Assembly (NCBI GenBank): GCA_047495785.1
Contig: JBLDXI010000013.1
Location: forward strand, 4,464,001-4,528,000
Length of the DNA stretch: 64,000 bases
Direction: 5' to 3'
Source of the DNA: Lepidodermella squamata
Lineage: Eukaryota; Animalia; Gastrotricha
Made by a program: the position numbers and the translations under genes. Below, piece after piece: positions 5,393 through 35,900 of the stretch (its first letter is position 1; each line of letters begins with the position of its first letter). The notes below the pieces were generated by a model, which worked only from the letters and a program-made list of their open reading frames with translations, searched no databases and was not told where the DNA came from.

Positions 5393-6307
5393 ATGCCAGT
5401 TATCATCGTCAGCGGGGCAACTGGTTTGCTCGGTCGTGCAGTGCTTGATGTGTTGAAAAAAAATCTGCCAGATGCTCAGGTTATTGGACTAGGATTTTCA
5501 AGATGTCCCGATGGAATTAAGAAATGTGATTTAACTGTGGAGAGTGAAGTGGCGCTACTATTTTCTGAGCTAAAACCCGCTGTATTCGTGCACTGCGCGG
5601 CTGAGCGGCGCCCAGATATCGTGGAAAGTGGAAATCCATCAGCTAAAGCTGTGAATCTTTCAGCCACGGAGATTTTGGCGGCTAAATGCTCACAGGCGAA
5701 TGCTGTTATGATTTTCATGGGCTCTGATTATGTTTTTGATGGAACTAGCCCTCCTTACTCGGAGTCTGCATCTCCTAACCCACTGAATACTTACGGTAAT
5801 CAGAAACTCGAAGGAGAGAAAATCGTGCTTGCAGCTAGCCCTCGTAACATTGTTATACGTATCCCAGTGTTGTATGGGCCATTAGATCCGAATTATGGAC
5901 TTGACGAAAGCTCTGTTACTACGCTTTTCAAAGCCGTGAAAAACAACACTGCGCCAGCTAAAATGGATCATGTGGCTATCCGTGTACCCACTCTAACAAC
6001 AGATATAGCTAAAGTTATGTTGAACATAATTTGTGGAATATTGGCTAGCAATGAAAAGATCAGTGGCATTCTACATGTTAGTGCCGCCGAAACCTTTACT
6101 AAATATGAGATTGCATGTCGCATGGGAGCGCTGTTTGGATTGCCAACTAATCATCTGATCGCCGATAAAGAGTCCGCATTTACTGCCGGTACTCGTCGTC
6201 CTATAGATTGCAAGCTATCATGCGATCGAGCTCGTGAACTTGGTCTAATGGTTGAGATGACTAGCTTCGATGAAGGCATCAAGTATTGCTTGGCCCCGTT
6301 CCGTTGA
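5393..6307 (+). CDS. MAT2B: Methionine adenosyltransferase II beta subunit (RmlD-like SDR fold), single coding exon
   Basis: GATGLLGRAV Rossmann motif, HCAAERRPD, SDYVFDG, PNPLNTYGNQK (YxxxK), IRIPVLYG, FDEGIKYCLAPF. Confidence 0.92.
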   Translation: MPVIIVSGATGLLGRAVLDVLKKNLPDAQVIGLGFSRCPDGIKKCDLTVESEVALLFSELKPAVFVHCAAERRPDIVESGNPSAKAVNLSATEILAAKCSQANAVMIFMGSDYVFDGTSPPYSESASPNPLNTYGNQKLEGEKIVLAASPRNIVIRIPVLYGPLDPNYGLDESSVTTLFKAVKNNTAPAKMDHVAIRVPTLTTDIAKVMLNIICGILASNEKISGILHVSAAETFTKYEIACRMGALFGLPTNHLIADKESAFTAGTRRPIDCKLSCDRARELGLMVEMTSFDEGIKYCLAPFR

Positions 6308-13958: not shown

Positions 13959-15603
13959 GTGCCCGAGCCTATAGTTAGATGGGTAGCTGATTTTCTGCGC
14001 GGCCGTTGTTTCAAACTGAAGGTGGAAGGCGAGCTCAGCGTCGTCCCTCAAGGGTCGCCTCTGAGTCCTTTGCTCTTCATTTTGTATAGAGCCGACATGC
14101 AGCCCCGTGAAGTTAAACCCGACGACGGTAAGCGTCGCGTTGCACCTACGCAGACGACACCCTCAACTGGGCGTACGGCAAGTCGCTTTTAGACTGCTCT
14201 CGGCGACTGCAGCTTCAACTGGACAACACTGTCAGGGGGTGCGCCCGTTGGCGCTTAACACTGAATCCTGAAAATGCGAAACAATGATTTTTGGCTTTTA
14301 TAATTCTTTACCCTCGATCCATCTCAGGTTAGGTCCCCGAAAGATTAAGCAGGTACAACAGCTGAAATACCTTGGTCTTCACCTTAGACAGTTGGGACAA
14401 TTGTCAGCAATTTCGGCAAAAACTGAGGATCGTCACTGCCCCCACTGCAATGGCGGCTGTGAGCCTCATCATTCTGGTTCGTGGCGTGGCTGCCCTGCAG
14501 TAAAGACCGCCCAGGCTGCAGAGGTGGTTCGTCGCCGTCCCATCGCCGTCGCCCGTGAAGCGAAAGCTGCCGAACGTGAAAAGCGTCGTCAACAAGCCAA
14601 GATTCCCGAACACCTACGGGGTGGCACCACGCACTTCCTCTCCACCTGTGACTTGGCGGACCGACGCCCACTCCGTGGTCAGCCCCGTCCCATGCGGTGG
14701 TGCCTCCTGCTACTCCGCCTCCGTTTGTCAATCCTGGTCACTCCGCAACCAATTTCTATCGCCTGATGGCGCCCGGCTTTTTAGTCTTATGGAAGAGCGA
14801 TTCCAGCGTATGGAAGCCGCTTTTGAACGTCGGCTCGAAACTGTCGGCCGCTTGTTCGATCGGCTCTTCGCCTCCCCGCGCTGCCACCTCAAACCAGCTC
14901 GACCCGCAATGGCTAGTACGCTGCACACGCTGCTACAATGGAACCCGTGCGGACTCCCTGGCACGGAACTTAAAGCTTGTCGACAGCTAGAGACTTATAA
15001 ACCCTGGTGGCCCTGCCCTGCAAACCCACCTACGTCGGCTGTTCAACATGTCTCCTGGCAGTCGGTACGTGCCTCAAGCGTGGAAAGAAGCGGTTGTTGT
15101 GCCTTTTCCGAAGGCCGGCAAGCCGCAGAACCATGTCTCGTAACAGCGTCCCATCTCCTTGCTGCCGACTGACGCCAAGCTCCTGGAGTCGATCGTAGCT
15201 CGGTGGATGACCCAGTTTCTCGAAAGTCAACACCTTCTCCTTGAGAATCATTTTTGCATTCCGTCAGCACCATTCCGCGCCAGATGTCCCACTTCGCATC
15301 GTTCATCGTGTCCACATCGTGTCCACAAGTCAGTTTAGGGTCCAAGTGAACACCGAGAACTCGTATCGACTCGACCTGCGGGATCACGGCTCCGTTGAGC
15401 CGAACATCGACGGACGCGCTACCAAAGGGCATAACTTCGCTCTTCGCGGGGTTAAACTTCCGGCGCCACTTCTTAGCCCAGTCGGAAATACGGGTGATCT
15501 CCAATTGGAGAAAGCTTCTCTGGCGAAGAATCGGTGAATCAGGGTGCGCCGGGCAGCTGCCCACATTTATGCCAGCCAAACAGATCAGAACATCTAAGCT
15601 CAA
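13959..15603. mobile_element. Cluster of decayed non-LTR retrotransposon (LINE) fragments in both orientations
   Basis: Plus strand: RT motifs WVADFLRGR...VPQGSPLSPLLFILY and LKYLGLHL, a gag-like knuckle CPHC...HHSGSWRGCP and an APE start LLQWNPCGL. Minus strand: RT C-terminus DWAKKWRRKFNPAKSEVM...IRVLGVHLDPKL. Frameshifts and stops are present. Confidence 0.85.
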
Positions 15604-16599
15604 AAAGTTATGCAGCGTCTCATCTCTTATTGCCTTAATTAATCAGTGACTTCACCAGCTGAGCCATTGAGCACGCCGCTATCAGAGTTGGTACGGCTTA
15701 ACAACAGCGAATCCTCTATGGAAAATCCAATACAATACGCCGCCAACTTTCTCCCTTTCCTGCTACGTGAAACTTGAACAAAAATGTTCACGGGTGCCTG
15801 CTATTTCACGTCCGTAAATCGTTTTGCCTGATGCACAACACTTACGGAAGTATACGTGACCCCACTACTTACAGTCACCCGAATTGACTGTAGGTACCTA
15901 TTGAACCAGGTTCCAGCTTCAAATAGCTGCACTGCATTGCTGCGACTTCAAAAAAACGAAGGCAAAAACATACTTAAAAACGTAACTTTATTTTTCACAA
16001 AGCAGCAATAACAGAGGAGGAGCTCCCTCGATCCTATAAATAGACAATTTTAGATTCCGACAGCCGCGTAACAGAATGTTTTCTCCAACTAAATAACTCG
16101 AATATAACTTTGGCAAAGACAATCCGCAAAAAATAACACAGAGAACGAACAACCACATACCGAAATGGATGCGACTGAAATGATGATAATAATTTAGTAG
16201 TAGATCATACAAATTAAGGAACTTTCAGCACGCAATTATTCATCAGAGAAATTGCAGAAAAAATGTCTTGACTCGTATAACGTGGCTCTCACGGGTCACA
16301 TTTGCATCACTGAGTTTATAGTGTACAGGTAGACAACCAGCGGTTGAAATTTTCGGACGGTGATTTGGATTGAATTACATTGCTGTGTGGCACCTTCAAG
16401 CAGCGGCAATGTGAGATGCCTTCAAATGCAAGCAATTTCAGGGTGGAAAAGAAAGGATTTTATTAGTGGGTGAACAAAATGGCTAAGTGTTGGATGGCTT
16501 TGAAGCGAGTGAAAAGGAGGAAAAATACCAGCGGCTAATTGTCAATAAAAACGGAATCTATGCTTCCAAAGTTTTTTATTACTAGGTAAGTGGCTATAA

Positions 16600-19500
16600 T
16601 CATGCAGCGTGTCTGAACACGAAAACCGAATCGTCGAGCAGGTAGTAAGGCGCGGACATGTCGCCCTCGCACAGGTACGGCAATTTCGTGAACGAGTGGA
16701 TTTCAAAGCCGAGCGGGCGCATCAGCTCGATGAACGACGCCGACTGCTCTTCGTAGGAATAGCCGCGAATGTTCAGCGTCTCGATGGGCTCCGTCGAGTT
16801 GCCCATCTCGACGTAGGGGCAGAACGGGAAGGCGTGCGCGACGATCAAATAGCCGTCCATCGCCAGTTTGAGCTTCATTTGCTTGATCAGCGAGATCGGG
16901 TGTGAGCAGCGGTCGAGCACGTTGAGGCACGCAATCGCGTCGTACATTATGCCGTGGTCCGTCCACGATTCAGCTGTTAACAAGCTATAAACAAAAATAC
17001 AGGATGTAACAGCTTTTTTACATTGATTTGGATATTGATTGTACTCAAGAATCGGTAGCAATACTGGTTCTCCTCCTAGACTTGTGACTGCAAAGATCGC
17101 CTATCAGATACCACCTTAGCAGGTACATTTTATTACTAGCTTCGTTATTAATTTTCTGCCAACATAAAATAGTTGAGTTCCATCGCCTCTTCAATTACTA
17201 TTAATCATCTGGCACAGCTAATCCAAAGATATGTTCGAATCTTCTCGATTTAAGGGGAAGAATTTCGCTCACAAGGACGTTACAAAAAAGGCGAAGAAAT
17301 CTACCTTGGAACGATTAATGACTTCGGCGAAGTTGAACTCAACTGATCAACAAAGAAGCAATGGATCGAATTCTTGATGTGATTGTTGCATTCAAGGTGC
17401 AGGATGGCAGCAAATACATGTGCAGGCCATTATCGATCTGCTTGCTCTTTCCTTTCTCGGCGCTCTCATCATGCGGCGATCGTTCAGGAATTACGACTTC
17501 GCCACGTGCCAAGTCTGGGAGCTCGACATCCAGGCTTGTGCCGCGTTGCCCGCAGCGGTCAAGACGACATGCCCCTCCCGACTGCCAATACAGCTAAACG
17601 GTTAATTTTAGAAGAAACGTCGTATTCCGTTGATCATTAGCTGGTCAATATGTCAGCGTGTTTCTATCGACGCCGTTCTCATCAATCAACTAGGAAACGT
17701 CTTCTTCCTTGATGGCCCTGGTGGATCCGGTAAAACTTTCACTTATTCAACTACCGTAGTTACCGAAATACTAACCCGGGCTTATACAAAAATGATACCT
17801 TTAAAAATGGGGAAAAGTAGGCTTCTATTCAAGACTAGGCTTCTATTTGAGATAGGCTTATGCAACGGAGATCTGACTTTACTTTCTGTCTTTCAATCCC
17901 AAAACTCATCAAAGTTTTCATTATTAGTTATTAGCTAGGTCGTCTAATAGCTGAAAATTAAGAATAATAAGGAATGCTTTAAATAAAGTCATCGTAAGTC
18001 GCAGATTATTGCATATCTTCACGAATTTTTCGTTTTTAAATACCGTTCAGCGCAGCAGAGCACACGTGCCGTAGTAGCCTAGGCTACTATTCGAGATAGG
18101 ACTATGCATCGACGAATTTCAATTTACCTAGGCTTCTAATCGAGACAGGCTTCTAAACGAGTGGGGGCTTATATTTCGGTAACTACGGTATTTTGACTCA
18201 TTTGCGAGCTTTGGGGAAAATATGCCTTGCTACTGCTTCCTCCGGTATTGCCGCTATTCGTCTCGAGGCCGGGCGTACTACCCATTCCAGATTTGTGATC
18301 CCGTTATCTCTCGATGAAGGGTCCAAGTGCTCCATTTCGAAAAAATCTCATGCCGATCATCAAACAGGCATATGTTATAATCATTGACGAGGCACCAATG
18401 CTGCACAGATTTGTATTAGAGGCTTTGGATTTCACGCTGCAAGACCTCATGGACAAGACTAACTCGCCTTTCGGTGGCAGGGTTGTTTTGCTAGGAGGTG
18501 ACTTCAGGTAAAAGAGTTACGATTGCTACATACATCAATATGGAATGAGCTCATGTAAGGCTGTTATATATGATGGTTTTAGGACATTTCATAGCTGAGC
18601 CGTTACCAACTATAAGTAATGAACCTCGGACCTATTCCTAATGTCTTGGCATACTGAGACTCTCATAATGTGCTCTGAGACTCTAAATATCCTGCACGAC
18701 TGCAGCCATCGAAAGGAGGTGAACAACCAGAAACAAGACAAAGTTAGTACTGTAGAAGTGGCAACTTACTGAAAGGCTTCGCGGCGAGTCAGACGCCAGC
18801 ACATTGGTGCCGATTTCTCCGTGACGTACACGTTGTCAAAGAGGGGTGCCATTTGTTCCGTGACTTTGCCGTCGCCAGCGCCAATGTCGAGCAGCGAGTG
18901 GGTGCGCCAGTCGTCGTCGACGCGCAGCAGCGCTCGGAATTGCGCTGTTGAGAAGACGAACATGGAGCCGCGGCCGAGCAGGCCGTTGATCGATGTTTTT
19001 GAGATGACGAAGCTGAGCAGTTTGGCGGCGAACAGGTGGAACATTTGCGTGAACAGCCAGTCCGACTTGGCGTACGACTGGTCTAGAAACAGATCGGTGC
19101 CGTTGTCCTGGCGTAATTGCACAAATTTGGAAGCCAGATCCATTGGCAAGGCTTTGAGATCAGCGGAGTAGTGCTGCAACACAATTCAATAATTACAGAA
19201 TGTCTACAATTTTTCAAAACTGTAAACGGGTTCCCTAAATTTTTTGCCTCGTCTACTCTTCTACCTCCTCAATCTGCCAAATTAAGGAAGAAATGTCTCC
19301 CTTCATCGCTTACAGTGCTTTTCGTGTCTCTTTGTCTATGAATAGAACAAGAATTTGCCTATTGCTAAAATGAAGATTTCTACTCAAAAACAGAAAAAGC
19401 AGCTTCCATTTCCCGTTGAGTATTCCGGTAACTCCCAATTTTATTGAGAAGTTTCAGTTTCTTAGCTATCAATAATTGTTGAAATTCCTTAATTTGAATT

Positions 19501-19953
19501 AGGCCATTATTAGCCTAAATTAGCCTGAGTTTATGCGTCAATTATTGAAACTTCTCTGCCTTCGCGTTAGTTCCATGCCAATATATATCAGCAACATGTT
19601 TTAAGCACTAGGCTACAAACTGGCATTGAATATGAGCTTTTTCTTGAATTTGAATTCAATCCTCAGAGCCTACTCCAATTTTAAGTTCCATTTTAAAGAA
19701 TTTTTTCATTTTTTCCAATTAATTCACCATTTAAATTAAACTGAACTTTACTAACTCTACTAAATGTACTAAAAATTTGAAAACTTCATCACATAATCCA
19801 AAATGTTATGAATAGCTCACCTTTTCTTGTTAAGAATAATATAGATCAAATGTCTGAATTTTCGAAAGAACTTACTTCTTTGCAGAGAACTTTCGAGTGA
19901 GTCTTGTCGAACTCGGCCCGTTGCATGTAGGCATTCATGAGCACCGAACGCAT
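16600..19953 (-). CDS. METTL9: Protein-L-histidine N-pros-methyltransferase (DREV). Exons 19953-19876, 19173-18770, 16984-16600
   Basis: TSINGLLGRGSMFVFS, LLDIGAGDGKVT, YVTEKS, CLNVLDRC, PFCPYVE and LPYLCEGDM..YYLLDD are METTL9 signature segments, and the splice phases are consistent. Confidence 0.93.
17500..18511 (+). mobile_element. Helitron Pif1-helicase remnant inside a METTL9 intron, split by a MITE
   Basis: RLILEETSY, FFLDGPGGSGKTF (Walker A), LATASSGIAA..L.AGRTTHSRF, IIIDEAPM, PFGGRVVLLGGDFR. One frameshift. Confidence 0.9.
17754..18188. mobile_element. Tc1/mariner-pogo-type MITE with TA TSD
   Basis: TIR CCGTAGTTACCGAAATA / TATTTCGGTAACTACGG with TA on both sides. Internal repeats of AGGCTTCTATT. 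Confidence 0.9.
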
Positions 19954-20212
19954 GATTAATTAAATGCAGTTAAGTAGAGATATTCGTCAAATTATTTACA
20001 AAACCGACATCAATATAAAATAACACCTAACCAGGAAAAAGTAAAATTATGAAAAACGAGATGCCAAATTGAAATATGACTACTATAGGCTATATACTTG
20101 AGCAGAGACTTTCAAACAAAAATTCCGGCAATTTTTTTTGAACACCGGACTTGAAAATTGAAATAAACGTAATTCAGCGGGGCTATATAGAATTCGAGAA
20201 TTGCAGAAGCAT

Positions 20213-23200
20213 TCAAAGGCCGATTTTGTAGGACCGGCCCTTCGGGTTGTGGATGGCGGTGCATCGCGGCTGCGTGATGGCCCACTCGTACCAGACCGAG
20301 TGGTCGTCCGACAGCCGCCACATGTGCACCTTCAACTTTTCGCCAGCCGCGAACTGCAACGGACTGACGAGCGGGAAGTAGATGGAAAACCACGAGAATA
20401 GATCGGGCGAGTGCGTGGTCGGGTGGATGCTCATGACGATGTCTTTGTACAGCACCGAGTCGAAATAGCCGGCCAGGCCGTGTATCGTCACGTCGTAGGG
20501 GATTGTGAATTCGGCACAGGCGAATCGATCGTTCGAATGGGGCTCTAAACGCGCAATAAAGGGGTAAATATTCGAGTGTGAGATGGCCGACTAATGATAA
20601 TATGAAGAAAATTGACCGCTCATAGTGCGCTTTTTCAATAAGGAAACACCGGAAAACTGGCTTGCAAAATCGATCAGATGAGAAATTTAATAAGGCCGTA
20701 AAGGGAATCTTGATTCTCTTTCCGCAGGCAAATTTTCTAAAATTTTAAAATTGATCAGCGTATTTCTCTATTGCCTATAGGTATAGCGTATAGCCCCATG
20801 TACAACTTACCCATTTTCACTTGGAGAAAATAAATGAAAAGGAATGAATATGGCCAATCCCTAATTTGCTACATAATTCGCTTCAAAGGCTTGTCTCGAA
20901 CGAATTATTATCATAAGCCAAAAAATGATATCGCCAATTGAGATTCTCAAGATTTAAATAGCGGTGGTAAGTGGTAAGTTTTAAGCACAAACGGAATTGT
21001 CTAAAAAATGGGTTTCATTTGCCAACTATTTTATTCGCCTTCATCATATTTTTTCGTTGTTCGGACTTCGAATTTACCCTGAATAAGGCCCTCAAAATAA
21101 CGAACCAAGAGCGCATTTTCATGCAATTTATTTCAATTTTTCAAATACATCGGTGCAATTTCCATCTAAAATTAATTTTTAAAAGAAGTTTTTTTTGCGA
21201 ACCCAATAATTTTCAATGAATTATCTTAGCTTGGCTCTTTGAAATCGGAGGAAACTTTCAATTACAATCTGACAAGTGAGCTCAAAAATCTACATGAAGT
21301 TCGGGGATTTTATGACACTAGACTGGAAAATATACCAATAAATAAACGGGAGAAATGCTTTCTGCCACCAAATTTGGACTTTCTGCCACTAAATATGAAA
21401 ATCCAAAAATCGCCACCAATTTGGATTTTCTTGTCACTACAAATGTTGAACTGAGGATGTTGCTCGTTAGGAGGAGAAATACCGGTAACAAAAGTGTCAA
21501 AAAGCCCGACGTGACTTAACAATTAAAGAAAAACAAGTGATTAGGAAGCTGAAAAGAAGCCGATTTCGCCAAGCACGCCAATATGAGCTTAAAATGGATA
21601 AACTTCATTAAGAAGTACCGTTCGATGGCCAGGGCGATCGTGCTTGAAGGACATGCCAATTCAACTTTTACAAATTATATAAAAAAATTCCAAAAATGTC
21701 TTATTGTTTATTGTTTACTTTTGTTATTGGACATATCAATTCGTGATTTAAGGATGGCAACCTCAAATTGGTGGCAAAAAACCCTAATCTGGTGGCAAGA
21801 AGTACCACTCCCTAAATAAATTTACATTAATTGTGTTCAAAGATGGAATTTAAATTTCAACAGCGGATCGGCTCCCTCATGAAGCAAGTGAGAGTCTACA
21901 ACTACTTTTCTAGAGAGAGACAAGAGTGGTTTAAATTGCCGAAAAGGGAGCGTTCGCTGTTTCGGGTATTCGCTGTTATGGCGGTCTGTTATGGCGGCGG
22001 GGTAGGACGTCAAAACAGCGAATGCGCAGAACAGCGAAACCGACATAACAGCGAAAGCGACAAAACAGCGAAAAATCCTCCCCAAAATGCTGTGTAATGT
22101 GCTATATTAAAATCGCTGTTATGTCGCAAATTAGATTTTTCGCTGTTTTGTCGCGTTCGCTGTTTCGGGTATTCGCTGTTATGGCGGTCTGCCTTATCAA
22201 ATCTTCTATAAAAATCAGAAGTCAGAAATCGCTTTAAAAAATATGCTTTTTAAACTGTTCAACTACTGGTTTCAGCCACAATTCTTACTCCTTCCATTCG
22301 TGCAAATCATTTACAGCTTTTTTTGAACACTCATTCAAACATTGCTTCACTGAAAATTCCGTTAATTTGATCTATAAATCTTACCGAAATTCGGATGATC
22401 AAACTTGAACATAGGCTGCGGCTCAGCAAACACGTTCGCGTTGTGAAATCGCACGACATACGGCAGTTCGAAGACGTACTCAGGGTGCTTGTAGCCCTGG
22501 TGCTCGCGCATGTTGAACAGCTCCGAGTACAAGCGATGCGCCTGGATAGGCGCAATGTACGACGTGTACGACGAAGGGATGCTGATGCCGCCGTCTTTTT
22601 TCAACAAATGCTGCGCCCCGTCCAAGCACTCGGGCGACAGCTCGTTGTCGCCGAACGAGCCGAGCAGTTCTGAGACCAAGATGTCGGCGAGTTGCGGCGG
22701 TTTCCACTGCCGCATGTCGCTCGCGATGATTGTCACGTCGTCGTTCGCCCACTCGGTGACGCGGCGGTTGCGCAGCGTCACGATCGCGTTCGGGTTCTTC
22801 TCGACGGCGTACACTTTCACGAGGCAGTCGGTTTTGCGGGCGGCTCGGAGTGTAGCGGCAACCAACGGACCTCGACCGGCGCCAACCACCATGACAACAA
22901 CGCTGGAAATTGAGAAAAATACATACCGTAAACTCCGAAATAAGAGCGCGGGGACTTGTATTTTCAAAGCAATTAAAAACGGGTCCTCCTGTCAGCGTAA
23001 CCAAATTTACAGTGAGCGAAACGAAATTTGCTGTATCGGAACCAAATTTTTGAATCTTCTAGTAGCCTTAAATCGCTTTTGCTTCCAGCCATCAGGGGTT
23101 TCGGGGTTTGGGCTACTGCAATTTCGGGCATACTTTCGGGAGTAGTCTAAAAATGATGAGATACAGTAGTTTTGCGTTAAGCCGGACGACAACAAGCCGG

Positions 23201-26200
23201 ACTTGCGTTAATACGGACAAAATCGGCTGGCTCGTGCCGCGGACTAGCGTTTTACATACTAATAGTTGCAATAAGCCGGACGCCATTAAGCCGGACATGC
23301 ATCAAAACAGATAGATTTTTTAGTGGATTTAACTTCAAAATGTCCGGCTTATAGTACAATTTTCTGAAAAAAACCCGCCGCTAAGTAAAAAGTACCAGCT
23401 GCGAGCCGAGTGAGCTATGCAACAGCTAGAATTGTCACCGCAGGTTTACTTGTGCTATTTACTAACAGTTCTCTATTTGAAAACTTTTTGAACAGTTGAG
23501 AAATTATAAAAAAAATCGCCATCCCTAAGCGCGCATTATCGCCCACCTTGTCGGCATCTGTAGAGAGTAGCGACCCTGACTATAAGGAGACTATGAGGCT
23601 GATACTTGCAAAAAATATTAAATAATTCAAGCTTTTTTCTAAACCGGACATGTCCGGCTTACATTAAGCCGGACAAAATCGTCTGGCGCGGGTCGTGTCT
23701 GGCTTAATGCAAAACTACTGTATATCATCATCTGTTATATGTTATATTTGGTCAGTTATATCTGTTATATCTGTTATATCATCAAGCCAATTTTCCCAGT
23801 TAATCAGCGATTATTATAATGTTTTTAATCCCGAAATTAGAAAGCAATGAGCTAGTAGCCATAAAAGGCATGATAAAATGTTATTTGCACACAGCGGTAC
23901 AAAATTAGGCCTGAGGACTTATTCGCTCAATTACCGTGAAGACTGAGGGCTTAACCCTTAGCCGCCGGCGCAATGACGTGTTAACTCGAGCACCTTTCAG
24001 AAAATCCCAGAAAATCAAGAAGAGGCTAAAATCAAATTCTGAGTCGGCAGAAAGTCTTACATTTAGCCTTAGATTGAAAGCCGAACCTCTTTTTCAGAAG
24101 AAATTTACCTGGGTTGCCGTTGCTATGACGTGTTAACGCGTTTTCATGACGTGTTAACAAGTCACTCGAAATTTTTCTCACTATTTTCGACCTGATCGGA
24201 ATGGCTTTGAAAATTTGGATTTTCGGGGAGTGCTTGTTTCATGCTATTGATTTATCATGATTTATGACGCAACAATGGGTTCAATAGCCCAAATGCTCCG
24301 ACCACGGTGAATTTTCTCCGGAATTAACGCGTGTACACGTCTTCGGCGGCTAAGGGTTAAGCCAGACGAGGTTTTATCACAGACCTGTGGTCCTTACATC
24401 GGATTTTACGTTATTAAAAAATCAGAGGGAATTTAATTGAAATCGATTATGAAAAGGCTAGACCGAAAAATTATATGTCTTGGCCATGAGTTCATTTTCA
24501 GTCAGGTTTATAGAATGAGTTTATCCCTCCATGCCGAGTTCACGTGCATTCGTTTCAACAGAAACTCGTAATAGAATCGACATCTTAATAAAATATACGG
24601 ATTCAACAAAATACGCCACTTACCTACTACTATTTCAAATAGTTCCTAACAATAAAAATCTCGCACTAGGATGGTAGGATGAAAAATGTGGTGTTTCACT
24701 ACCGTAGAGGAAATTTTCAGTCTCGCTTGTTCAAGACTAGGCTGAAAATTAAATGAGCGTATCACATGTTATTGTCTTTTTTCTGGCTAAAAACTTACCG
24801 TATTCCCTTGCAAACTGTGGCACTGCCGTTATACAAGAAGCGAGCTGGCATGCAACTATACCCCGGGGAACAATGGCATGCCTTTAACGAATGGGGTAAA
24901 TTGGGAAAATTTAAAGTTTTCAATTAAGATGATTAACGCTGTAATGGCGCTCATTTTACATTGCGATGCGCATTCTTCGTGGTTATTGCGTATTTCGAAG
25001 CTGATTGGAGACTCCTAAGGCTTATGGCATCACTGACTTTCAATCTAGACTGGCCAAATCCTCCCCGAAAACGAGTCCGAAGATGAAGAACCTGCCTGCC
25101 CCTAAATCTACCGGCATCACTAACGACGAGAGCAACGATAGTGGTGTCAAATTCCTCGAATGAATGGTTTAATATTAAGGAGAAAATGCTTTCTACTATC
25201 AATTTTGCAGTTTCACCGTCAATTTTGGGACTTACGCCATCAAACCGGAAAATTCTAATTTCAGCGTCGATTTTGGGGTTTTCATCATCAAATTGCGACT
25301 TTCGCCAACTATTTTTTTTCATTTTTCGACTAAAATTCGTAAATATATTTTAGTCATCTTCTACAACCGATATTTCTATTAACTAATCAAATTAACTAAT
25401 CAAAGCACATTTTTGGCTTCTGCTTTCGCGCATCGAAATAGATAAAATCACAATTTTAATCCTGCTTCGCTTATTATACCAGTCCCTTTCGGTTAGTGGC
25501 ACTGCCATACTTAATGAGGGATTTCGATTTTTGATGTGCCAGCTTTTATATTGGCTGCCACAGTTTGCAAGGGAATACGGTATAGCGGCTGTTCAAATTC
25601 GCACCTAGTTCAACGAGGTGGTGCGGCATAAAAGCGATTCCCCTGTAACAAACTACTGTACTACATACGACGCCGCTAACTTTCTCCCAGAGCGACCAAA
25701 TGCTGAATTTTGGCAGCAGCCGACCCAACAGCCGGACGAGCAGCTCATCCTCGCAGCTGAGCAGCAGCAAAGAAGGAGGCCTGGTCGTCCTCGAGGTAGC
25801 CGAAGCCGTTCTGGCAGCCGCCCAACCCGTCGTTCCACTCGTGGTACCCGCCGTCGGCGCAGCGGTCAACATGCGGCGGCAATTAAATATTGTTGAACGG
25901 GTCGAAGATAATTGATGTTTTAGGAGAGAATAAATAAATAAATGAATGTTGTACGTTTCGGAGATAAACTTGTTGTACAGGGGAAGATAAAGCGTTGTAC
26001 GAATAAAGCAGCAGCCCCCTTTCCTATCACGTGAACTCGGCTTGAATGAAACAGGTGCCCACCGGTTAGGAGGCTACAAAAAACGGCTCAATCGCCGACA
26101 AGTTTCACTTTCTACTCTACTGCGAAACCATATCCTCTCAGTTTGACAAGACTTTTCCTTTCCCGCAATGAACAAATTGCTGATCGCCATCTTGCTAGCG

Positions 26201-29200
26201 GCTAGTATCGTCGTTTTTACACTAGCGGAGGGTTACGGAGGCGTTCTTTAATGCCATCAGTTGCCACACCTATTTCAAGGCTCTGTTTTGATTGCGCAAC
26301 TGAGCTTTCACGAGAAAGCGAATTTTCAATTTTCATTTTGTTTTCGGCATAAAAATGCCGCCGTTGTTTTGCTCAGGGAAAAATCAGCCGTTAGTACATA
26401 AAATCATGCTGGGTTTGCATCAACTTGAGCCACCTGAAAATCAATTTTCGTGGTTATGGCCCTCGAAATTAAAGCCATGGAGAAACAAAGATTCATTTTT
26501 GAATGTCACCGAAGTAATTTGACTGTCAAATGTGATCAAAATTTGCTATATATTTGCATTTACGGTCAAAATGAGTCACCTAATGCTATTCTTCAAGGCC
26601 GCGGCGATGTTTTCATTTTTCATATTTTTTCGAAAATGGGAACGATTAATCACCCTAGACAATGAACCGTGTTCTATGCCATAAGTTAATCAAACATAGA
26701 AACACAGGGAAAAATAGTTGACGAATATCTAAAATTCGAGGTAAATTCATATCTCATGGGCAGAAAAATCTTAGAAAAATTCAAAATGTCATGAGAATAG
26801 TAAGCAAGTATGTCACTTGTCAATGAGTTGTGAATAAGATGAAAGGGTCCAACGGGGTAAAATACCTTAATCAAAATTACGGAAGCAGTTAAAATCGGAG
26901 TTTTCCGGGTTTTCTCCGCTAAATTTTTAAATTTATTCGGTAAAATGGCGGATGAAGGATCGAATATTCTCCTTGGATTTTTTTTCCAAAATTACGTCTA
27001 AAAATTTGCAAATTTGCGTAAATTCCAGGACACGTATTTTTGTAGGTTACGAATTTATTTAGAAAAATATGACTAAATTCTCAAGCGATGGCCATCAGCT
27101 GAACCAAATTCAAACAATTTTCGACGTTCGGGTTGTAGCCGAATATTCTTTTGCTGATCAAATTTCCGACTGGCAAATGGCAAAATTTGTAAATTTAATC
27201 AATAACACAATTATTGAAAAAATTCAATGTGTCGAAATATTCGAATAATAATTGAGGCTACTAGTAAAAATGACTTAGTAAAAATCTACGTAGCTTAGGG
27301 CACCAGGTAGCTAAAATAAAAAATCCTAGTTTCAGGGAGGGCATCAGTATCGATCAAAGGCTCACCACCAAGCGTCACAGGAACACACCACTTGCAGCAG
27401 CGATTACGCAACGCAAATAACTCGCTGCGTTGCGCTCTTTTTAATTCGTGTTGCACTTTGGTTGAAATATGATGCGCGTGCGACGCTTATTTATTTTCTG
27501 CTGCACTTCGGTATTTTGTGTGGCGCTGTGGTTTTCAGCGTCGATCAAAAACTGAAAACGCCGAAATCGCAATGAATGTAAAAAATTTAGTTCCAGGACG
27601 CTCAAAATTAGTGCTGAAGCCTTGTTTTTAGTGGTGCCATTATTTGGGCCCTATAACAATCCTGTGATTTGAACAGTGGTCCTCAACCTATTTTCGCTAA
27701 CTACCAAAAATTAGCCGGCCGGGAACCTTTCCGGTTGAATCGCCGCTTGTCAACAATTTAGAATGTTTGTTCTAGCGGACGAGGGACGAGTGAAAAATGA
27801 CCAAAAAAGCTTAGAATTAGAAATGATAAAATATATGAACTATGAACTATGAAATAGGTAAGGTCTAATAGCAATTTTCAGATTCAAATACTTGAAGTCA
27901 AAACGCGCGCGAAATGCAAGTGATAAACATGCGGACCTCTGCAGACCGCAAAGAACGAGGCAAAATCGGCGGGAAAATCGCGACTTAAGACTTGAGAGTC
28001 ACTGAATTTAGTAATCCTCTTTGTACCTATCATTTTGTATCATTTAGTATCTTGATTTCAGGTGAATTTTCAAAGTTAAAAGCAAAAGCTTGAATGAACA
28101 TCATGTAAAAAATAAAAATATATATTTCAACTTTTCAGTTTTGATTCATCAACCATTGTTGCGTCACAAAATTAAGTGCGTAAACAGATAAATTTAGGGT
28201 TTTTCAATCGCCGCAAACTCAGCAGCGCGATAGCTCTAATTTCGGACGTCCGAAATTCGGCACACTACCCTGTCCGAATTTGAGGCACAACAAGTTAGAA
28301 CGGTTCACCAGGGGATTCCGTATAAAGTTTAAACGCCACGAAATTTTTATCTTCGAATCTATACTATAATATTTTGGACCTTTTATCATGGAATCGGTCT
28401 GTATGGTGTAAATGAACGTTTTAGCGATTTTTAAATAATATTTGTGGGTGTGTGAGCCATGTGGCCGACGTTCAAATGGTCGTATTCGCGCGGCTTATTT
28501 AGAAATATGCCTAAACGTGCTGGGAAGACCGTCAAGAAGGGCAAAAAATGTACGTACAATAAGATAGCTCCAGGCTTGAAGGACAAGATCAAGCCATTTC
28601 ATGAAGCCGCGATGGACTGTGTCAAGACAGCACGAGTCAAACTTCAAAGTTAACTGGCGCGTGCTCGTTTATTCTACTCGTGAGGATGTTTTGTTGCTGT
28701 TAGTACAGGATTTGTGGAGTGATGAATGAGTAAATAAACAAAAATGGGGTTAAAGAATTTCAACATCTGAGCAACGTCTTGGCACGCATGATAATTGAAA
28801 AAAACGTAAAATTAAGTAGTTCTGATTAATGAACAGAGGAACCCACGAAAATTACCGAATTCTTACAGTATCAGTATCTAGCTGGGATCTGGATGTTAAT
28901 TCTCATCCTCTTCAATGAAATACTAGAGACGGAGGACAAATTCATAAATTCCGTAGCTAAAAGTAAGGACACCTTTAGAAACTCAACCATCGCTTTCAAA
29001 CCACGAAACGAATCGAAACGTTTTACGCGCTCACATTGCGCGCAAGTTGCGAGCACGCGGACCCGCTTCCAAAATTCAATGTAAATGTATCCTCATGTAT
29101 TTTTATGTGTTCTTAACATTATGACCTTTCATATAGGATAATTACATAATAAATTATTTCCTTGATAATATAGTGTTTTTTTTTTAGGAAATTCGAGAGC

Positions 29201-30864
29201 TGGGCTAGGGTTCAGGGTCAACGTTAGGGTTCGGGTTTTTTCAAAGTTCGACTTTAGGGCACTTGCACTTCGCCAATATCAATTTCCGAGCGGAGAAAAA
29301 TTACTACGCAATCGGAACCCCGTTTATTCCGAAGTAAATTCGCAGCTCAAGTCGGCTTTTGGGTTACTCACACGCCATTAAAATATCACCCATCAGGACT
29401 TGGATGTTCTTCATAATAATACGAATATTGCTATATTTAACAACTCACGTCCGACTTTTTCGCTCCTCGACCGGGACCATGTCATTCAGAGCTGCCGCAA
29501 CAGCTTGATGGTACAGCTCGTACTTGGTTGGGTCACGCTCGAACGTTTCATACGTCTGCGACTCGAGGTTGTCCATCAGCGGCTGAAGCGGGCACTGCAG
29601 GCAGTCTTCGTAGCCAGATGCGAATTCTTCGATGACATTTTTCGGCGGCATTGTCTTGTACATGTGCGCGAGATACTGCGCATACACTTGATAGCCTTTT
29701 TCCGACCTGCAGTGGCCGGTTATCACTGGCTGCGTTCCAAGCTGTAAATGAGATATGAAAAAATTGGTTCAAATCCAAAATCGCAAAAAATTATTAAAAG
29801 ACAAAATTATCTGTGTTGACTTTTGAATCGATTTAAATATGAATTTTTTCACAATTTCGATTATTTTTCATTATTTAAACAATTTTTAGCTATTTTTTCG
29901 ATTTATTGCGAATACTGACCCTGAAAATTCGCTGCAACATGTTTTGATGAACTTTCGGCAACACCGGATAGCTGGCACGATTTACTAGAAAGGCACTTGT
30001 ATCAACGAAAACGGCTCGAATCGGCTCCCCAAGCCACCTTTGAAACGCAGTCTACGCAAGCCAGCCAAATTAAATCATTTTTTCAAATCACAATAAAAAA
30101 CCGACTTCATCCGGGGCATTTGGACCAATCATCAAGGCGAGCCCGACTCTCAGCTGATTTTGCGTCAAAATTCGTAGACGATTCCACCAAGTCCACGGGT
30201 CGTTTTCTGGATCTGGATTTTCAGTCGTAGGACCACACGCTGGAATAGCGATCCAAACTTGGCTAACAAATCCGTGTAATTTCGAGAAATGCGAGTACAA
30301 AATCCGAGCGAGATTAGCGCAATTCGGCCCTCGTAACTGGTAAACAACGGCTGAAACAGCTAGATGAGAGGCGAGCGATAATTCTTCCAAAAAAGCCTGT
30401 AATTTCGCAATTATAGCAATTCAATTTTTCGATTTCTACTGCAAGACCTTTTCAGATATGTGCCGTTCAGCGTCGTTCGGATCGTCGACATCGATCCAGG
30501 ATGAAAGGCGAGGCACGACAACGTGCTGCCAATCTGAGATTTTAATTCAATTTTCATCGATTTTTTCTTTCATGTCGTTATTTGACTGTCTTACCATCGC
30601 TGCTAATGACCATGTCCGAGCGCGTGCTTGGTCTCGCTATTTCTTCACTGTCATCTGCATTTACGCGACGGCGCCGTCTCGGATGAAAAAGTGGTGTGAC
30701 AACAAATCCGAAGCTAAACAAAACAACAAAATAATCGATCATTTCCGCTCCGTAGCACTCAAACTATCATCCTACCCCTGAGTTTTCGATTCAGCAAGGC
30801 ATGACGGCAGATCGCTCGTGAAACAAAAGTCGCGGCCAAATACTAGACTCTTCTGGTTTTTCAT
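20213..30864 (-). CDS. PRMT5: Protein arginine N-methyltransferase 5. Exons 30864-30776, 30713-30595, 30533-30448, 30396-30106, 30051-29920, 29741-29449, 22902-22385, 20544-20213
   Basis: TIM barrel ([21 protein letters not shown]), [97 protein letters not shown]. Confidence 0.97.
21949..22191. repeat. ~40-bp direct repeat pair with intervening inverted copies of the CGCTGTT motif
   Basis: GCGTTCGCTGTTTCGGGTATTCGCTGTTATGGCGGTCTG occurs at about 21949 and about 22153, with several AACAGCG copies between them. Probably a MITE remnant. Confidence 0.65.
23164..23720. mobile_element. Tc1/pogo-type MITE with TA TSD
   Basis: TIR CAGTAGTTTTGC(G/A)TTAAGCC at both ends, TA flanks, and internal AAGCCGGAC repeats. 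Confidence 0.88.
23955..24356. mobile_element. piggyBac-type MITE
   Basis: TTAA|CCCTTAGCCGCCG ... CGGCGGCTAAGGG|TTAA: TTAA TSD and CCC/GGG termini. Internal ATGACGTGTTAAC repeats. Confidence 0.9.
24798..25580. mobile_element. Tc1/pogo-type MITE with TA TSD
   Basis: TIR CCGTATTCCCTTGCAAACTGTGGCA / TGCCACAGTTTGCAAGGGAATACGG, with TA on both sides. Confidence 0.88.
26020..26251 (+). pseudogene. Truncated copy of the secreted-peptide gene family (promoter plus signal exon only)
   Basis: CCTTTCCTATCACGTGAA...TTAGGAGGCTAC...TCCCGCAATGAACAAATTGCTGATCGCCATCTTGCTAGCG aligns with 48450-48266 (minus strand). The donor GT has become GC, the TATA is degraded and no second exon was found. Read-through gives 27 aa. 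Confidence 0.75.
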
Positions 30865-31162
30865 TTCACGCAATACGTATCTACTGGAAAATAATCGATA
30901 AATTGTGTCCGCTCATAATGCTTTAATGGCATTTTCGCCGAGCCGCAAACATGATTGCGCGCAAACAAGTGAATATCATCAGCGAATTTATTATTGAAGC
31001 CGAATAATACGCATCTATGTACGTGACTAGCGACTATATACCAACGAGAGAAATCTATTTACAAAAATACTCGTCAACAAAAATGAAGACGGAAGAGAAA
31101 AATGTCTTTGGCACGAAATTTTAAGCACAATATCGAGTCCTAAGAATCCCAAATGAGCAAAA

Positions 31163-32041
31163 TCAGACCGGTGATGGCTTTTTTGTCGTACTCGGCCGTG
31201 GAATATTGCAGGGTTTTTCGTTATTAGCGCTGCTTTCTGACCGTAAATCCGTCACAGCCTGATGATATCCAGTGTGAAAACCGGCCATGTACCAACTCAT
31301 GAGTGCGCAGTGCAGAGTTGACGACGAGGGGCCAGCCGGCGACTGCATAAGAGGCATAGCACTCGGTGAGAGTGCAGGAGGTAGCATGAACGCGTTCGGT
31401 TGACGCGAAGAAGAACAACCACAAGAATCACAAGAGCCACTGGCTTTTTGATGTTGTTGATCTTGTTGAATAGACGGAGAGTAATTACTGAATTGATGAG
31501 TAGATTGCTGTTGCGGTTGCTGTTGCTGCGGCTGTTGCGGATGTTGAGGGGGATGATAAGTAACCGGAGCGATTTCGTTGAGTAGTTTTTCATCCTCCTC
31601 ATCATAACCGATATAGCGAACAGTGCAAGAGAAGGTAGACTTTGAGATCTCAATGATTTCTGCCTCATAAGGCAACCCGTCTTCATATAACGCCATACAC
31701 TTATCACCGACTTTCCAGCGAATTTGGGGCGAGTGAGATACGAAAGATACATCTTCATTAGGCTTGTTACCTAGGCTTTCGTTGTGTTTCGTGTTTTTCA
31801 ACGCTGATTTGATTGGCTTGCGCTTGACATCGGGAGTGACGTCAGATCCTTGAAGCTTGCTCAAAGCTAGCTTTCGGCTTTTCTCGTAAGCGCGAATCAA
31901 TGCTTCATCGTCAATATCGACCTCGTCGTCAAGCGAGGATGAGTTATCAGCTGGGTCTTTCGAAGCACCTCTACTCCAGATCACAGAACCTGCTGCAGCT
32001 GCAGCTGTATTTCCAGAAGCGCTATCCATAACTATTGACAT
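31163..32041 (-). CDS. SMN: Survival motor neuron protein, single coding exon (start 32041 or 32029)
   Basis: Gemin2-binding DDEALIRAYEK, Tudor domain WKVGDKCMALYEDGLPYEAEI...CTVRYIGY, and YG box LMSWYMAGFHTGYHQ. Confidence 0.95.
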   Translation of the reverse strand: MSIVMDSASGNTAAAAAGSVIWSRGASKDPADNSSSLDDEVDIDDEALIRAYEKSRKLALSKLQGSDVTPDVKRKPIKSALKNTKHNESLGNKPNEDVSFVSHSPQIRWKVGDKCMALYEDGLPYEAEIIEISKSTFSCTVRYIGYDEEDEKLLNEIAPVTYHPPQHPQQPQQQQPQQQSTHQFSNYSPSIQQDQQHQKASGSCDSCGCSSSRQPNAFMLPPALSPSAMPLMQSPAGPSSSTLHCALMSWYMAGFHTGYHQAVTDLRSESSANNEKPCNIPRPSTTKKPSPV

Positions 32042-32939
32042 ACATCTAACAAACTGTGAGTGAAAAAGTGAAGTGTTAGTGCACCGTGAAAAGAATAAAG
32101 TATAAAAGAAACCGTGAAAGTGGAGTGAAAGAAAACGTGAAGTAATGTGACCACCAAAACTTAAATCCAGTAAAGTAAACCCATTGATCACGGTCAAGAA
32201 AGAGTATTATTTAAGAAATGAGCAATGAAGACTCATGTATGGACTGAGCAATAAGATGGATGCAGCACATCGCACGTCATCCAACTTCAACCCAATGAGG
32301 TATCAAACATCGCTACTTGGCTAAAAAACATCGCGATCAAGAAAACAGTTTCTATTGAATGATTCACGCTATCTAGCTATCTACGCTATCTAGCCGCTGC
32401 TAGCCACAGAGAGTCGTCGCAATCGGCAATCAGTATCGGACATAGGCCTTCCGCGGCTATCTCGTAGCTCAATTTCAAGAAGTCGAAGTTCTTTTGGAGT
32501 GAAGAGCAAAGCCCGCGTGGTTTTCAACGTCAAGGTCGCGCGGGCTCTTCAGTCTTTCCGCCGCCGGAAACTCAATTCAGCTGTTCGGCAGATGTGGGGC
32601 CATAAAATTGGCATATTGCAATTCAGAAATATGCAATTTATGGTCAGCAAGAGTTTTGAATAAAAATCTGAATAATTAAATACAGTTCGAAAATAAATGA
32701 ACCCGCCTTTAAAAATCAAAAATCTTCCGCCGCGAGCTGGTTCCGCGATTTGCCCGACTCAGAACTCAGACCTTTTCAGACTTTCAGACCTGATTACTCT
32801 TTTTCATTTCTGCGTGATCGCTTATCGCTTGTGATGACATTTAACTTTACCGACAATGTGATATGATTTCTCCTGCTTTGTCTTTTCTGTTTCTTTTCTG
32901 CTAACTCATGCTTAATGAATGATTCATTATTTGAATTAG
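32042..32939. promoter_or_regulatory. Divergent (bidirectional) intergenic region between SMN and PHF14
   Basis: Head-to-head genes about 0.9 kb apart with a CpG-containing centre. Each ATG is immediately preceded by a splice acceptor. Confidence 0.5.
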
Positions 32940-35900
32940 ATGGAAGAACCTTCGTCTAGCTTACCTACAGAACTCAACTTCTTGCTAAGAGGCAGAGCTC
33001 CAGGGAAACGTCAGATTAAACCAGTTTCTATTGAGCAAGCTCAAGCCAGTTTGGCGTGGGTAAAAAATATTTGCGGAGACGATGACGAGGAAGAAGATGC
33101 CGATGGCGCTCCTGATATAATCTCGCCGAAAGCTGCCTCGGAAAATGGCGATGATGGCGAGACGCAGGAAGAATTAGATGAAGATGAGGCAGCGGACGAC
33201 GAAGAGGAAGAAGCTTCCTTAGGCGAAGAAGCCAGCGACGAAGAAGAAGACAGAGGCGAACATTCTGCAGACGAAGAGGAATCTGTTGATGAAGTTGGAC
33301 CGGAAGATCTTTCTGAAGACAATCCTGTTGAATCAGAGCTAACAGTTGATCAGAAGCCTCTTAAACTTGTTGTGAAGCGCGCTGTTCAAGTTGCCACGGT
33401 TGAAGAGCAGCACGAAGATGAACCTGAACAGGTTCCAGCTGGCCTAGGTTTCTTGCTTAAAACTCGCGCACCTGGCAAACGCAAGATCAAACCAGTCTCT
33501 GCCGAGAAAGCTGCAATCCTCGCCGAACTCGGTGGTAGTGATGATGACGACGAAGACTTCCAATGCGCGGCTGACCCTCATGAAAACGACGACAATAGTA
33601 ACACATCAGCCGCTAGCGAAGACAGCGATGATAGTGACTACTCTCCTGCCAAGAAGAAAACCAACAAGAAGAATGGCCACAAAAATGGTTACCATTCAGA
33701 CGATTCAGACGTTCAAATAACCAAAGAAGAACATAACTCTATCCATATTGATCTCGATTCATTCGATAATTCATCATCAGTGTCATCGAAACCTCAAGAA
33801 TTGCCATCTGGTAGTGGTCCGAAGGTCGAAACACTAGTTTGTTTAGTTTGCCTGAAAGAAAATAACGATAATCCCGATAACGAGCTGGTTCAATGTGATG
33901 GCTGTGGTATAGCCTGTCATGTTTTATGTTATGGTATAAGCAAAATCAAACTATTCGCTACTGATCTTTAATTCATTTGTTTCTCTATAGGAATCGGCGA
34001 ACTGAGTGATCTAGGCATGGATGACGGCAGATCCACGCCGCTTTCTACAGCTTCGACTGAGCCGTGGTTTTGCGACTCATGTCGTGCCAGTTCTCAGAAA
34101 GTTTCTTGTCAGCTATGCCCAAACGAGGGCGGAGCTTTCAAGCAAACAGATTCAGGCCACTGGGTACATCTAATTTGTGCCCTTTACACCGGCTGCAGCT
34201 TCGGCGAAGTCGGTGGTCTATCACGTGTCAATGTTAACACTATCAAACAGAAACAATGGGGCTCTCGGGTTTGCTCATTATGTCCGGATCCTCAGTTTGC
34301 TAGCACAGGTTCGTCGTCGAATATTTTCCACTGTCTTGTTTGTTTATTTAAAATTTTCAACAGGAGTTTGTATCTCATGTGATGCTGGAATGTGTCGAAT
34401 GGTTTTCCACGTAACGTGTGCTCAACGTGAGGGCCTATTAGCCGAAGCTCCAGTGGCCGTAGCAGCTTCAGTACTCACATCAGCAATGCATTCTCCGATG
34501 GCGAAAATGCCAAAAGCGCATAGAAATGATTATTCGTCGGACGAGGAGGAAAAAAAGCAGCGCAAGCGGCAAGCGGCTGCTACCGAAGCAGCTGATCCGT
34601 TTTACGCATGTTGTAAACGGCATTCAAATCCGGAGGCCACAAAGAAAAACAGACGAAATTGTTTGGCTGCTTTTCGGATTTGCAATACGTTCAAGCAAGA
34701 CGATCGATGGGAATTAGGTAACATTAATTAGCCGTTTTTTCGATTATATTTTTATTATGTGCAACAATTCCCAAGTCATAATTACATCCTCATTTACGGA
34801 CATTTGGTCCGACTTGAGTTGGTCTGCCTAGACAAACTAATCCTCTCAATTTATTGAGCTGATTGATCACCTCTTCCAAATTTTTCAGTATTTTAGCGTG
34901 GTCATTTCGCCTATGTCCATTGAAATCTTGTATCAGTTGGCTTTCGCGCCTCTCCGCCAATATCCGAGTACAATTACCAGTGTTCCCTCTAAGGTGTAGG
35001 CTTATTTGTTGAAGCAAGTATTACCGAAAATCTTGGTTGTCAACTAGCTATGCTTAAATGTCAAGCATGCTTAAAAAAAATCGCGCTCGCTCGTAGTTTT
35101 TATTTATACTTCATCTCAATCGCTTCATATCGTTCGTGTTGCGACGTAAGGAACCGCCAGTGCTAGCGCATATTTCTATATATCATTAGACCACTTCATA
35201 GCGGTTGTTTACAACTGCGGGGCGGTTGCATCCCAAATTACTATCTTCAGTTCACAGGGGCTATAAAATTGCCATTAGCAGCGGTCTTGCATTCTCAGCG
35301 ATTCTTGACCCTTGAAGAGAGTAACTCAGCTTCTTCGCCTATAAACTTTTCTCACTCAAATGTTTCTCATGCTTTTCATGAATTCTTCGATCGAAGATTC
35401 TACGGGTAGCAAAAACGAGTGACCACGACCTGGTGCCGTACATTTATCTTTATTTTAAGGCAGCAAAATGAGCTAAGGAAATTAAACCAATATAGTAATT
35501 CATCACACACTGAGTTCCAGCAGGACGGGCGATAACAGGTAACAGGTTGAATAGTAGCCAGCACTCAGCAATAATTTAGAGCGACCTTTTGCCGGAATTT
35601 TGCCAATTTCCATCTCATATCTCCAATCAATGTCCAATTCCAGTAACCAATCAGTTATAACAAAATTGGCGAATTCGAGTAAATTTTGAAGTAAAAAAAT
35701 CCTATCGAAAATTCAGAATTTAAAATGTGATGCAGCAGTTGATAGAATGCAGAGAAATACCTAACTGCAGTCGATAGATGTTGAGATCGAGAGTTTGAAG
35801 GATAACGTGATTAGTACCCATTGTAATCCACTGGGTAATTAAATTGCAAGTGGCAGCCATCATTTGAAAAATACATGGAATGATTCGGGCAGAAGGTAAC

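Follow-up and report, generated by a model that had tools for sequence, protein, structure and literature searches.

The window analysed here, a 64,000-nt stretch of eukaryotic DNA with about 42% G+C, carries three intact genes arranged head to tail on its minus strand, SMN, PRMT5 and METTL9 (DREV). The stop-to-ATG distances read from the sequence are 298 nt from SMN to PRMT5 and 259 nt from PRMT5 to METTL9, and a PHD-finger gene with its ATG at 32940 lies divergent from SMN on the plus strand. The identities of the three genes, their shared orientation and the 298 and 259 bp spacing had been proposed in a sequence-only reading, and all are borne out by Pfam and the sequence coordinates. Scans of the window for tRNA genes and for Rfam families were both empty.

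The gene models were compared with a distant relative and with assembled contigs of sequencing runs. A word search that took METTL9 exon 2 as its query led to the relative, found on ENA metagenome contigs (L001-L004) with a 68%-identical protein. RNA evidence came from three matched runs, all in the form of contigs, compared over 29300-33000, a range that covers only the SMN-PRMT5 junction. Run X1 behaves as RNA, with spliced joints in PRMT5 and a collinear, intronless SMN, and run X3 is unbroken across introns and spacers and behaves as DNA. The RNA and DNA contigs are 2-3% divergent from the window haplotype.

31163..32041, minus strand: SMN, a single exon (Pfam, structure match, RNA-type contigs collinear without joints)
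20213..30864, minus strand: PRMT5, eight exons at 30864-30776, 30713-30595, 30533-30447, 30395-30106, 30051-29920, 29741-29449, 22902-22385 and 20544-20213 (X1 joints, Pfam, homology to L001)
16600..19953, minus strand: METTL9 (DREV), three exons at 19953-19876, 19173-18770 and 16984-16600 (Pfam, homologues, splice sites read from sequence)
32090..32939, no strand assigned: intergenic region between the divergent SMN and PHD-finger genes (layout and X1 contig)

The SMN open reading frame encodes 292 amino acids from the ATG at 32041, or 288 from the conserved ATG at 32029, and closes with a stop codon at 31165-31163. It matches SMN_Tudor and SMN_YG-box in Pfam (PF06003 at 26.7 bits, cut-off 22.7, and PF20635 at 29.3 bits, cut-off 21.3), and with both the Tudor domain and the C-terminal YG box present it is a member of the SMN family. 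Matches in the PDB include fly and human SMN, and the top solved structure is that of Drosophila SMN in entry 4v98 (the SMN-Gemin2-Sm complex), where the alignment spans the pre-Tudor region and the Tudor domain. At one position the window protein has a Glu where fly SMN ('GYEN') and human SPF30 ('GYGN') align an Asn, which we take to be a contact to the methylated arginine. Exact look-ups of the protein from the two start codons found no record, and SMN also had no match in a word search, whose length filter the fragments probably did not pass.

The eight exons of PRMT5 add up to an in-frame coding sequence of 1860 nt, or 619 amino acids, from the ATG at 30864-30862 to the stop codon at 20215-20213. 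Four introns, 29742-29919, 30396-30446, 30534-30594 and 30714-30775, have GT..AG joints in X1, and for a fifth, 30052-30105, the loose end of an X1 contig at 30106 matches the start of the next exon; the remaining exons were positioned by Pfam and by homology to L001. The spliced models of this gene and of METTL9 were searched exon by exon. The PRMT5 exons in the window match PF05185 and PF17286, PF17285 (the TIM barrel) matches the orthologue of the relative, and the SAM motif GAGRGP and the double-E loop read from the sequence are intact. With catalytic and oligomerisation domains and intact motifs, the gene encodes PRMT5, a type II arginine methyltransferase. PRMT5 is the writer and SMN the reader of the symmetric dimethylarginine of Sm proteins.

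METTL9 has a coding length of 867 nt, corresponding to 288 amino acids, with its ATG at 19953-19951. The DREV profile PF05219 is matched by the two large exons at profile positions 7-135 and 137-264 of 265, which together give a full-length DREV methyltransferase domain. The nearest named homologues in the searched collection are protein-L-histidine N-pros-methyltransferases, and a hexamer scan places an AATAAA at 16580-16575, 20 nt past the stop codon. METTL9 is a protein-histidine methyltransferase that is not known to be linked to Sm methylation.

The SMN-PRMT5 and PRMT5-METTL9 junctions

Both junctions contain an acceptor-like site shortly before the ATG of the downstream gene, and the 3′ UTR of SMN extends far into the first.

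30906..31162, minus strand: SMN 3′ UTR (RNA-type contigs; X1 record 3 unbroken over 30906-31336)
30884..30891, minus strand: TTTTCCAG, acceptor-like site upstream of PRMT5 (read from sequence)
20027..20040, minus strand: TTTTTCCTGGTTAG, acceptor-like site upstream of METTL9 (read from sequence)

The SMN 3′ UTR contains an AATAAA at 30992-30987 and, by hexamer scan, a second signal, ATTAAA at 30927-30922, which is nearer to the PRMT5 acceptor. The SMN contig (X1 record 3) passes the AATAAA and stops at 30906. This end point follows the ATTAAA by 16 nt, and from it there are 22 nt to the acceptor AG at 30885/30884 and 42 nt to the PRMT5 ATG. The latter two distances leave too little space for a conventional promoter and a 5′ UTR outside the SMN transcript. 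On the other side of the junction, 30827 is the first position of the X1 contig of PRMT5, 57 nt past the TTTTCCAG acceptor, and 30828-30905 is devoid of X1 contigs, so the distance from the SMN 3′ end to the 5′ end of PRMT5 is at most about 80 nt. No X1 contig bridges the two genes, an absence that is uninformative since contigs drop rare precursors, and the contigs over 29300-33000 show neither a leader nor a soft-clipped non-genomic 5′ end. Contigs cannot reveal rare forms or the ends and levels of RNA, and these results neither prove nor exclude trans-splicing. The PRMT5 5′ end was also sought in metagenomes, with the version of the window and with that of the relative, and both scans were blank.

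The AATAAA, TTTTCCAG and TTTTTCCTGGTTAG motifs pointed out in the sequence-only reading were all found in place when the sequence was reread. That reading had also put about 100 nt between the AATAAA and the PRMT5 acceptor; the motif positions stand, but the effective spacing does not, as the RNA contig of SMN ends only about 22 nt from the acceptor.

The AG of TTTTCCAG, at 30885-30884, precedes the PRMT5 ATG by 19 nt and is predicted to be the trans-splice site of that gene. The AG of TTTTTCCTGGTTAG, at 20028-20027, lies 73 nt before the METTL9 ATG, and in the relative TTTTCTTTCTTGTAG is found 45 nt before the METTL9 ATG, within a PRMT5-METTL9 gap of 120 nt. The window holds 124 YYYYYYAG matches, where shuffles give an expectation of 119 +/- 10, and RNA-confirmed cis acceptors at this locus are often weaker than TTTTCCAG. 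Since the motif thus occurs at chance frequency and genuine cis acceptors can be weaker, the acceptor motifs by themselves carry little weight. A GT at 30950 could also pair with the AG at 30884 as a possible cis intron of 67 nt, which could then belong to a PRMT5 5′ UTR overlapping the SMN 3′ UTR.

A scan for 14 poly(A) hexamer variants, among them AATAAA and ATTAAA, found none in the PRMT5-METTL9 gap. A hexamer-free gap here, as against the AATAAA after METTL9, would fit the pattern of internal versus terminal genes of an operon. The gap DNA of both junctions is unalignable between the window and the relative (alignments A1 and A2), and no conserved motif was found in it.

Gene order and spacing in relatives

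In L001-L004 a divergent PHD-type gene is followed by SMN, PRMT5 and METTL9 on one strand, and the amino-acid identity to the window is 44% for SMN, 71-86% for PRMT5 and 68-70% for METTL9. PRMT5 spans about 2.4 kb in the relative versus 10.7 kb in the window. The gaps of the relative are 583 nt between SMN and PRMT5 and 120 nt between PRMT5 and METTL9. The shorter of the two is hard to fit with a separate promoter and therefore supports an operon junction at that place, whereas the longer one is sufficient for a promoter of its own and gives no such support. An apparent truncation of SMN in L002 was rejected as a deletion, as the scaffold has a run of Ns there.

A tblastx comparison shows that the conserved order extends well beyond the three genes, with a six-gene block of formin, proteasome ATPase, the PHD gene, SMN, PRMT5 and METTL9 collinear between the window and the relative. 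Between the window and L001-L004, the order of the trio is thus not conserved beyond the background synteny, and because flanking non-operon genes are collinear as well, its conservation is not specific and provides no argument for selection on the pairing. Of the synteny in related taxa that the sequence-only reading had named as a check, the order SMN, PRMT5, METTL9 is indeed kept, but the wider block is equally collinear and the trio is not singled out.

Other contigs add little on the neighbourhood. A closer relative (L009, 93% amino-acid identity) is represented by a 995-nt contig without neighbours. In another organism (L010), an 8.4-kb PRMT5 contig carries neither SMN nor METTL9. The METTL9 genes of further organisms (L005-L008) have no PRMT5 upstream, with flanks of just 0.1-0.9 kb that make them uninformative.

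Operon model and alternative explanations

The arrangement is read here, with about an even chance of being correct, as a three-gene spliced-leader operon, SMN-PRMT5-METTL9, driven by the divergent promoter of SMN and the PHD-finger gene. The genes are co-oriented and separated by short intercistronic distances (298 and 259 nt), and the model would combine their co-transcription with trans-splicing at both acceptor sites. Transcription by RNA polymerase II would begin at about 32150-32300, upstream of SMN, and run through the three genes over about 15.6 kb. Cleavage and polyadenylation of the SMN message would take place near 30906, about 16 nt past the ATTAAA, and a leader would be joined to the PRMT5 message at the AG at 30885/30884, 22 nt beyond the SMN end, and to the METTL9 message at the AG at 20028/20027, while METTL9, as the last gene, would end at its canonical AATAAA. 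The strongest local support for the operon comes from the 22-nt distance between the SMN contig end and the acceptor, together with the 120-nt gap of the relative.

A similar layout could result from three independently transcribed genes, with PRMT5 and METTL9 each driven by a promoter that sits within the upstream gene's 3′ UTR or overlaps it, and with acceptor-like motifs that either arose by chance or serve short 5′ UTR introns as cis acceptors. This explanation is somewhat less likely than the operon. The chance frequency of YYYYYYAG speaks for it, as do the sizes of the gaps (298 and 259 nt here, and 583 nt between SMN and PRMT5 in the relative), the lack of a leader and of an X1 contig across the SMN-PRMT5 junction with 30828-30905 bare of contigs, and introns of 51-67 nt at this locus, which make a cis intron from GT 30950 to AG 30884 plausible. 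It is difficult to reconcile, however, with an SMN RNA contig that ends 42 nt before the PRMT5 ATG and with a PRMT5 stop codon that in the relative is just 120 nt from the METTL9 ATG. At 259 nt here and 120 nt in the relative, and without a poly(A) hexamer, the short PRMT5-METTL9 gap could also suit an operon of these two genes, next to which SMN would be a separate, abutting unit. Such a boundary would agree with an SMN-PRMT5 gap of 298 nt here versus 583 nt in the relative and with the two canonical signals of SMN, but the SMN RNA contig ends 22 nt short of the PRMT5 acceptor, a spacing on a par with the tightest operon junctions, and the two-gene version seems unlikely.

The presence of SMN and PRMT5 side by side invites a functional explanation, in which selection would couple the writer and the reader of Sm symmetric dimethylarginine and thereby co-regulate the assembly of snRNPs and of the spliced-leader RNP. 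In C. elegans, spliced-leader trans-splicing requires two members of the SMN complex, smn-1 and smi-1, as well as the methylosome component icln-1 (pICln) (PMC5737717), which renders the functional SMN-PRMT5 idea plausible without bearing on this locus. The SMN-PRMT5 adjacency also persists at an SMN identity of 44%. The coupling nonetheless appears improbable, as the whole six-gene block is collinear, the divergent non-operon neighbour included, the PRMT5 of L010 is without either neighbour, and METTL9 falls outside the theme. In addition, adjacent gene pairs number in the thousands and each gene has many functional partners, so that some related neighbours are to be expected by chance, which is a rough argument and not a computed figure. 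The proposal of the sequence-only reading that reader-writer coupling is the reason for the operon therefore finds no support in the comparative data and leaves METTL9 uncovered. Its description of the operon as functionally coherent holds for SMN and PRMT5 and fails for METTL9, for which we know of no role in Sm methylation. Within the three-gene operon model, the pairing of SMN and PRMT5 is best explained by the packing of housekeeping RNA-processing genes into operons, as a side effect and not a demonstrated adaptation, and it may be luck that the two are adjacent.

In its proposed form, the locus resembles nematode spliced-leader operons of the C. elegans SL2 type, both in placing co-oriented, unrelated or loosely related housekeeping genes behind one promoter and in having the upstream 3′ end just before the next gene's unpaired 3′ splice site. 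The distance from the RNA end to the acceptor differs, being about 22 nt here versus about 100 nt in C. elegans. The operons of that species are reportedly enriched in RNA-processing genes, and its smn-1 and prmt-5 are presumably located on different chromosomes. The compact operons of tunicates, flatworms and rotifers have intercistronic regions that are very short or absent. The present locus is similar to them in the very short distance from the poly(A) signal or site to the acceptor, whereas its stop-to-ATG gaps (259-298 nt) are longer and it belongs to another phylum, probably the gastrotrichs. The SMN/PRMT5 methylosome pathway is matched in its parts by an SMN with Tudor domain and YG box and a PRMT5 with GAGRGP and double-E loop. 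SMN and PRMT5 are not known to be neighbours in animals with an annotated genome.

A literature search found no paper on gastrotrich trans-splicing. If confirmed, the operon would be one in an animal group without published trans-splicing, it would encode assembly factors of the spliced-leader RNP, and it would offer a handle on whether operon membership sets the PRMT5:SMN ratio. A more far-reaching version is doubtful, in which a conserved spliced-leader operon of gastrotrichs encodes SMN and PRMT5, so that the leader-RNP machinery depends on trans-splicing and selection on stoichiometry keeps the pair together. Were it true, it would imply a built-in feedback, since SMN and PRMT5 build Sm cores, including those of the spliced-leader RNP.

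The upstream region of SMN

The intergenic region at 32090-32939 is likely the shared promoter region of SMN and the PHD-finger gene, whose divergent arrangement is also present in L001. The SMN 5′ UTR reaches into this region, and the X1 contig upstream of 32089 is a divergent allele of the genomic sequence. A 59-nt loose end of the contig at 32089 was considered as a spliced leader and rejected, as it aligns to the genomic upstream sequence (22/27 identical, score 34 versus a control maximum of 27) and its boundary is without an AG. Judging from this alignment, the loose end is the other haplotype with a small deletion.

32054..32085, minus strand: conserved 3′ splice-site-like block upstream of SMN (alignment A3 with L001 6063-6092)

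Of the sequence upstream of SMN, this block alone aligns well between the window and L001 in A3. It consists of a CTAAC branch-point-like motif, a T-rich tract and a CAG ending at 32054, and precedes the start codons of SMN by 13-25 nt. In both species CTAAC or CTCAC, a T-rich tract and a CAG are found 13-30 nt before the SMN ATG. The block is a candidate acceptor of an outron or of a 5′ UTR intron, and may thus serve for trans- or cis-splicing of SMN itself. The X1 RNA-type contig runs unspliced through the CAG at 32054, with which a spliced form is still compatible.

Features of the SMN gene

32054-32085 (-), branch-point-like motif, polypyrimidine tract and CAG, shortly upstream of the SMN ATG
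about 31590-31600 (-), SMN Tudor segment 'RYIGYDEE'
31505-31540 (-), glutamine-rich CAG/CAA run in SMN

The block preceding the SMN start codon has a counterpart at positions 6063-6092 of L001, a metagenome contig of the relative that keeps the SMN, PRMT5 and METTL9 order, and it is retained in two species between which the DNA flanking it shows no alignment. The block is a possible acceptor for SMN itself, either in trans-splicing or for an intron in the 5′ UTR. The unspliced form across it is seen in an RNA-type contig (run X1, in which spliced joints are present).

Within the Tudor domain the aromatic positions appear to be kept, and alignment places a Glu in the SMN of the window where fly SMN ('GYEN') and human SPF30 ('GYGN') have an Asn that serves as a dimethylarginine contact. 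The sequence of the relative reads 'GYDDQ' at the same place. A loss of the Tudor region in L002, a second contig of the relative, was considered and rejected, as L002 6464-6563 is a run of N marking a scaffold gap and no deletion.

The glutamine tract of SMN is suggested to be length-polymorphic, because at the CAG/CAA repeat both the RNA-type contigs and the DNA-type contigs (run X3) break and branch, with several alternative fillings. A second haplotype is present in both runs, with 2-3% divergence across the locus.

Intron expansion in PRMT5

22903-29448 (-), PRMT5 intron of 6.5 kb
20545-22384 (-), PRMT5 intron of 1.8 kb

The two long introns represent a strong local expansion, of which repeats are probably the source. 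The remaining introns in the window span 51-178 nt, and the counterpart of the 6.5-kb intron measures about 146 nt in L001. In L009, a 995-nt contig of a closer species with 93% amino-acid identity, that counterpart is about 60 nt long.

Putative mobile-element remains and neighboring genes

17630-18511 (+), PIF1-like helicase pieces inside METTL9 intron 2
14000-16000, G+C-rich stretch (53%) downstream of METTL9, including an ORF at 15043-15603 (-)
5393-6307 (+), intronless ORF of 304 aa containing the complete RmlD substrate-binding domain (E about 1e-54)
7066-11674 (+), alpha-2-macroglobulin/TEP-like gene adjoining the RmlD ORF

Three frame-shifted ORF pieces in METTL9 intron 2 match PF05970 (E about 1e-15 for two). 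The segment is the decayed remnant of a helicase of the Pif1/Helitron type and lies in antisense orientation to METTL9. The G+C-rich stretch is missing in the relative, whose METTL9 is followed directly by a gene for a ligand-gated channel. One ORF in the stretch had no match in Pfam and by eye resembles the C-terminal portion of a reverse transcriptase from a non-LTR retrotransposon. Farther away, the RmlD ORF may encode either a MAT2B-like subunit that regulates SAM synthesis or a reductase acting on sugar nucleotides.
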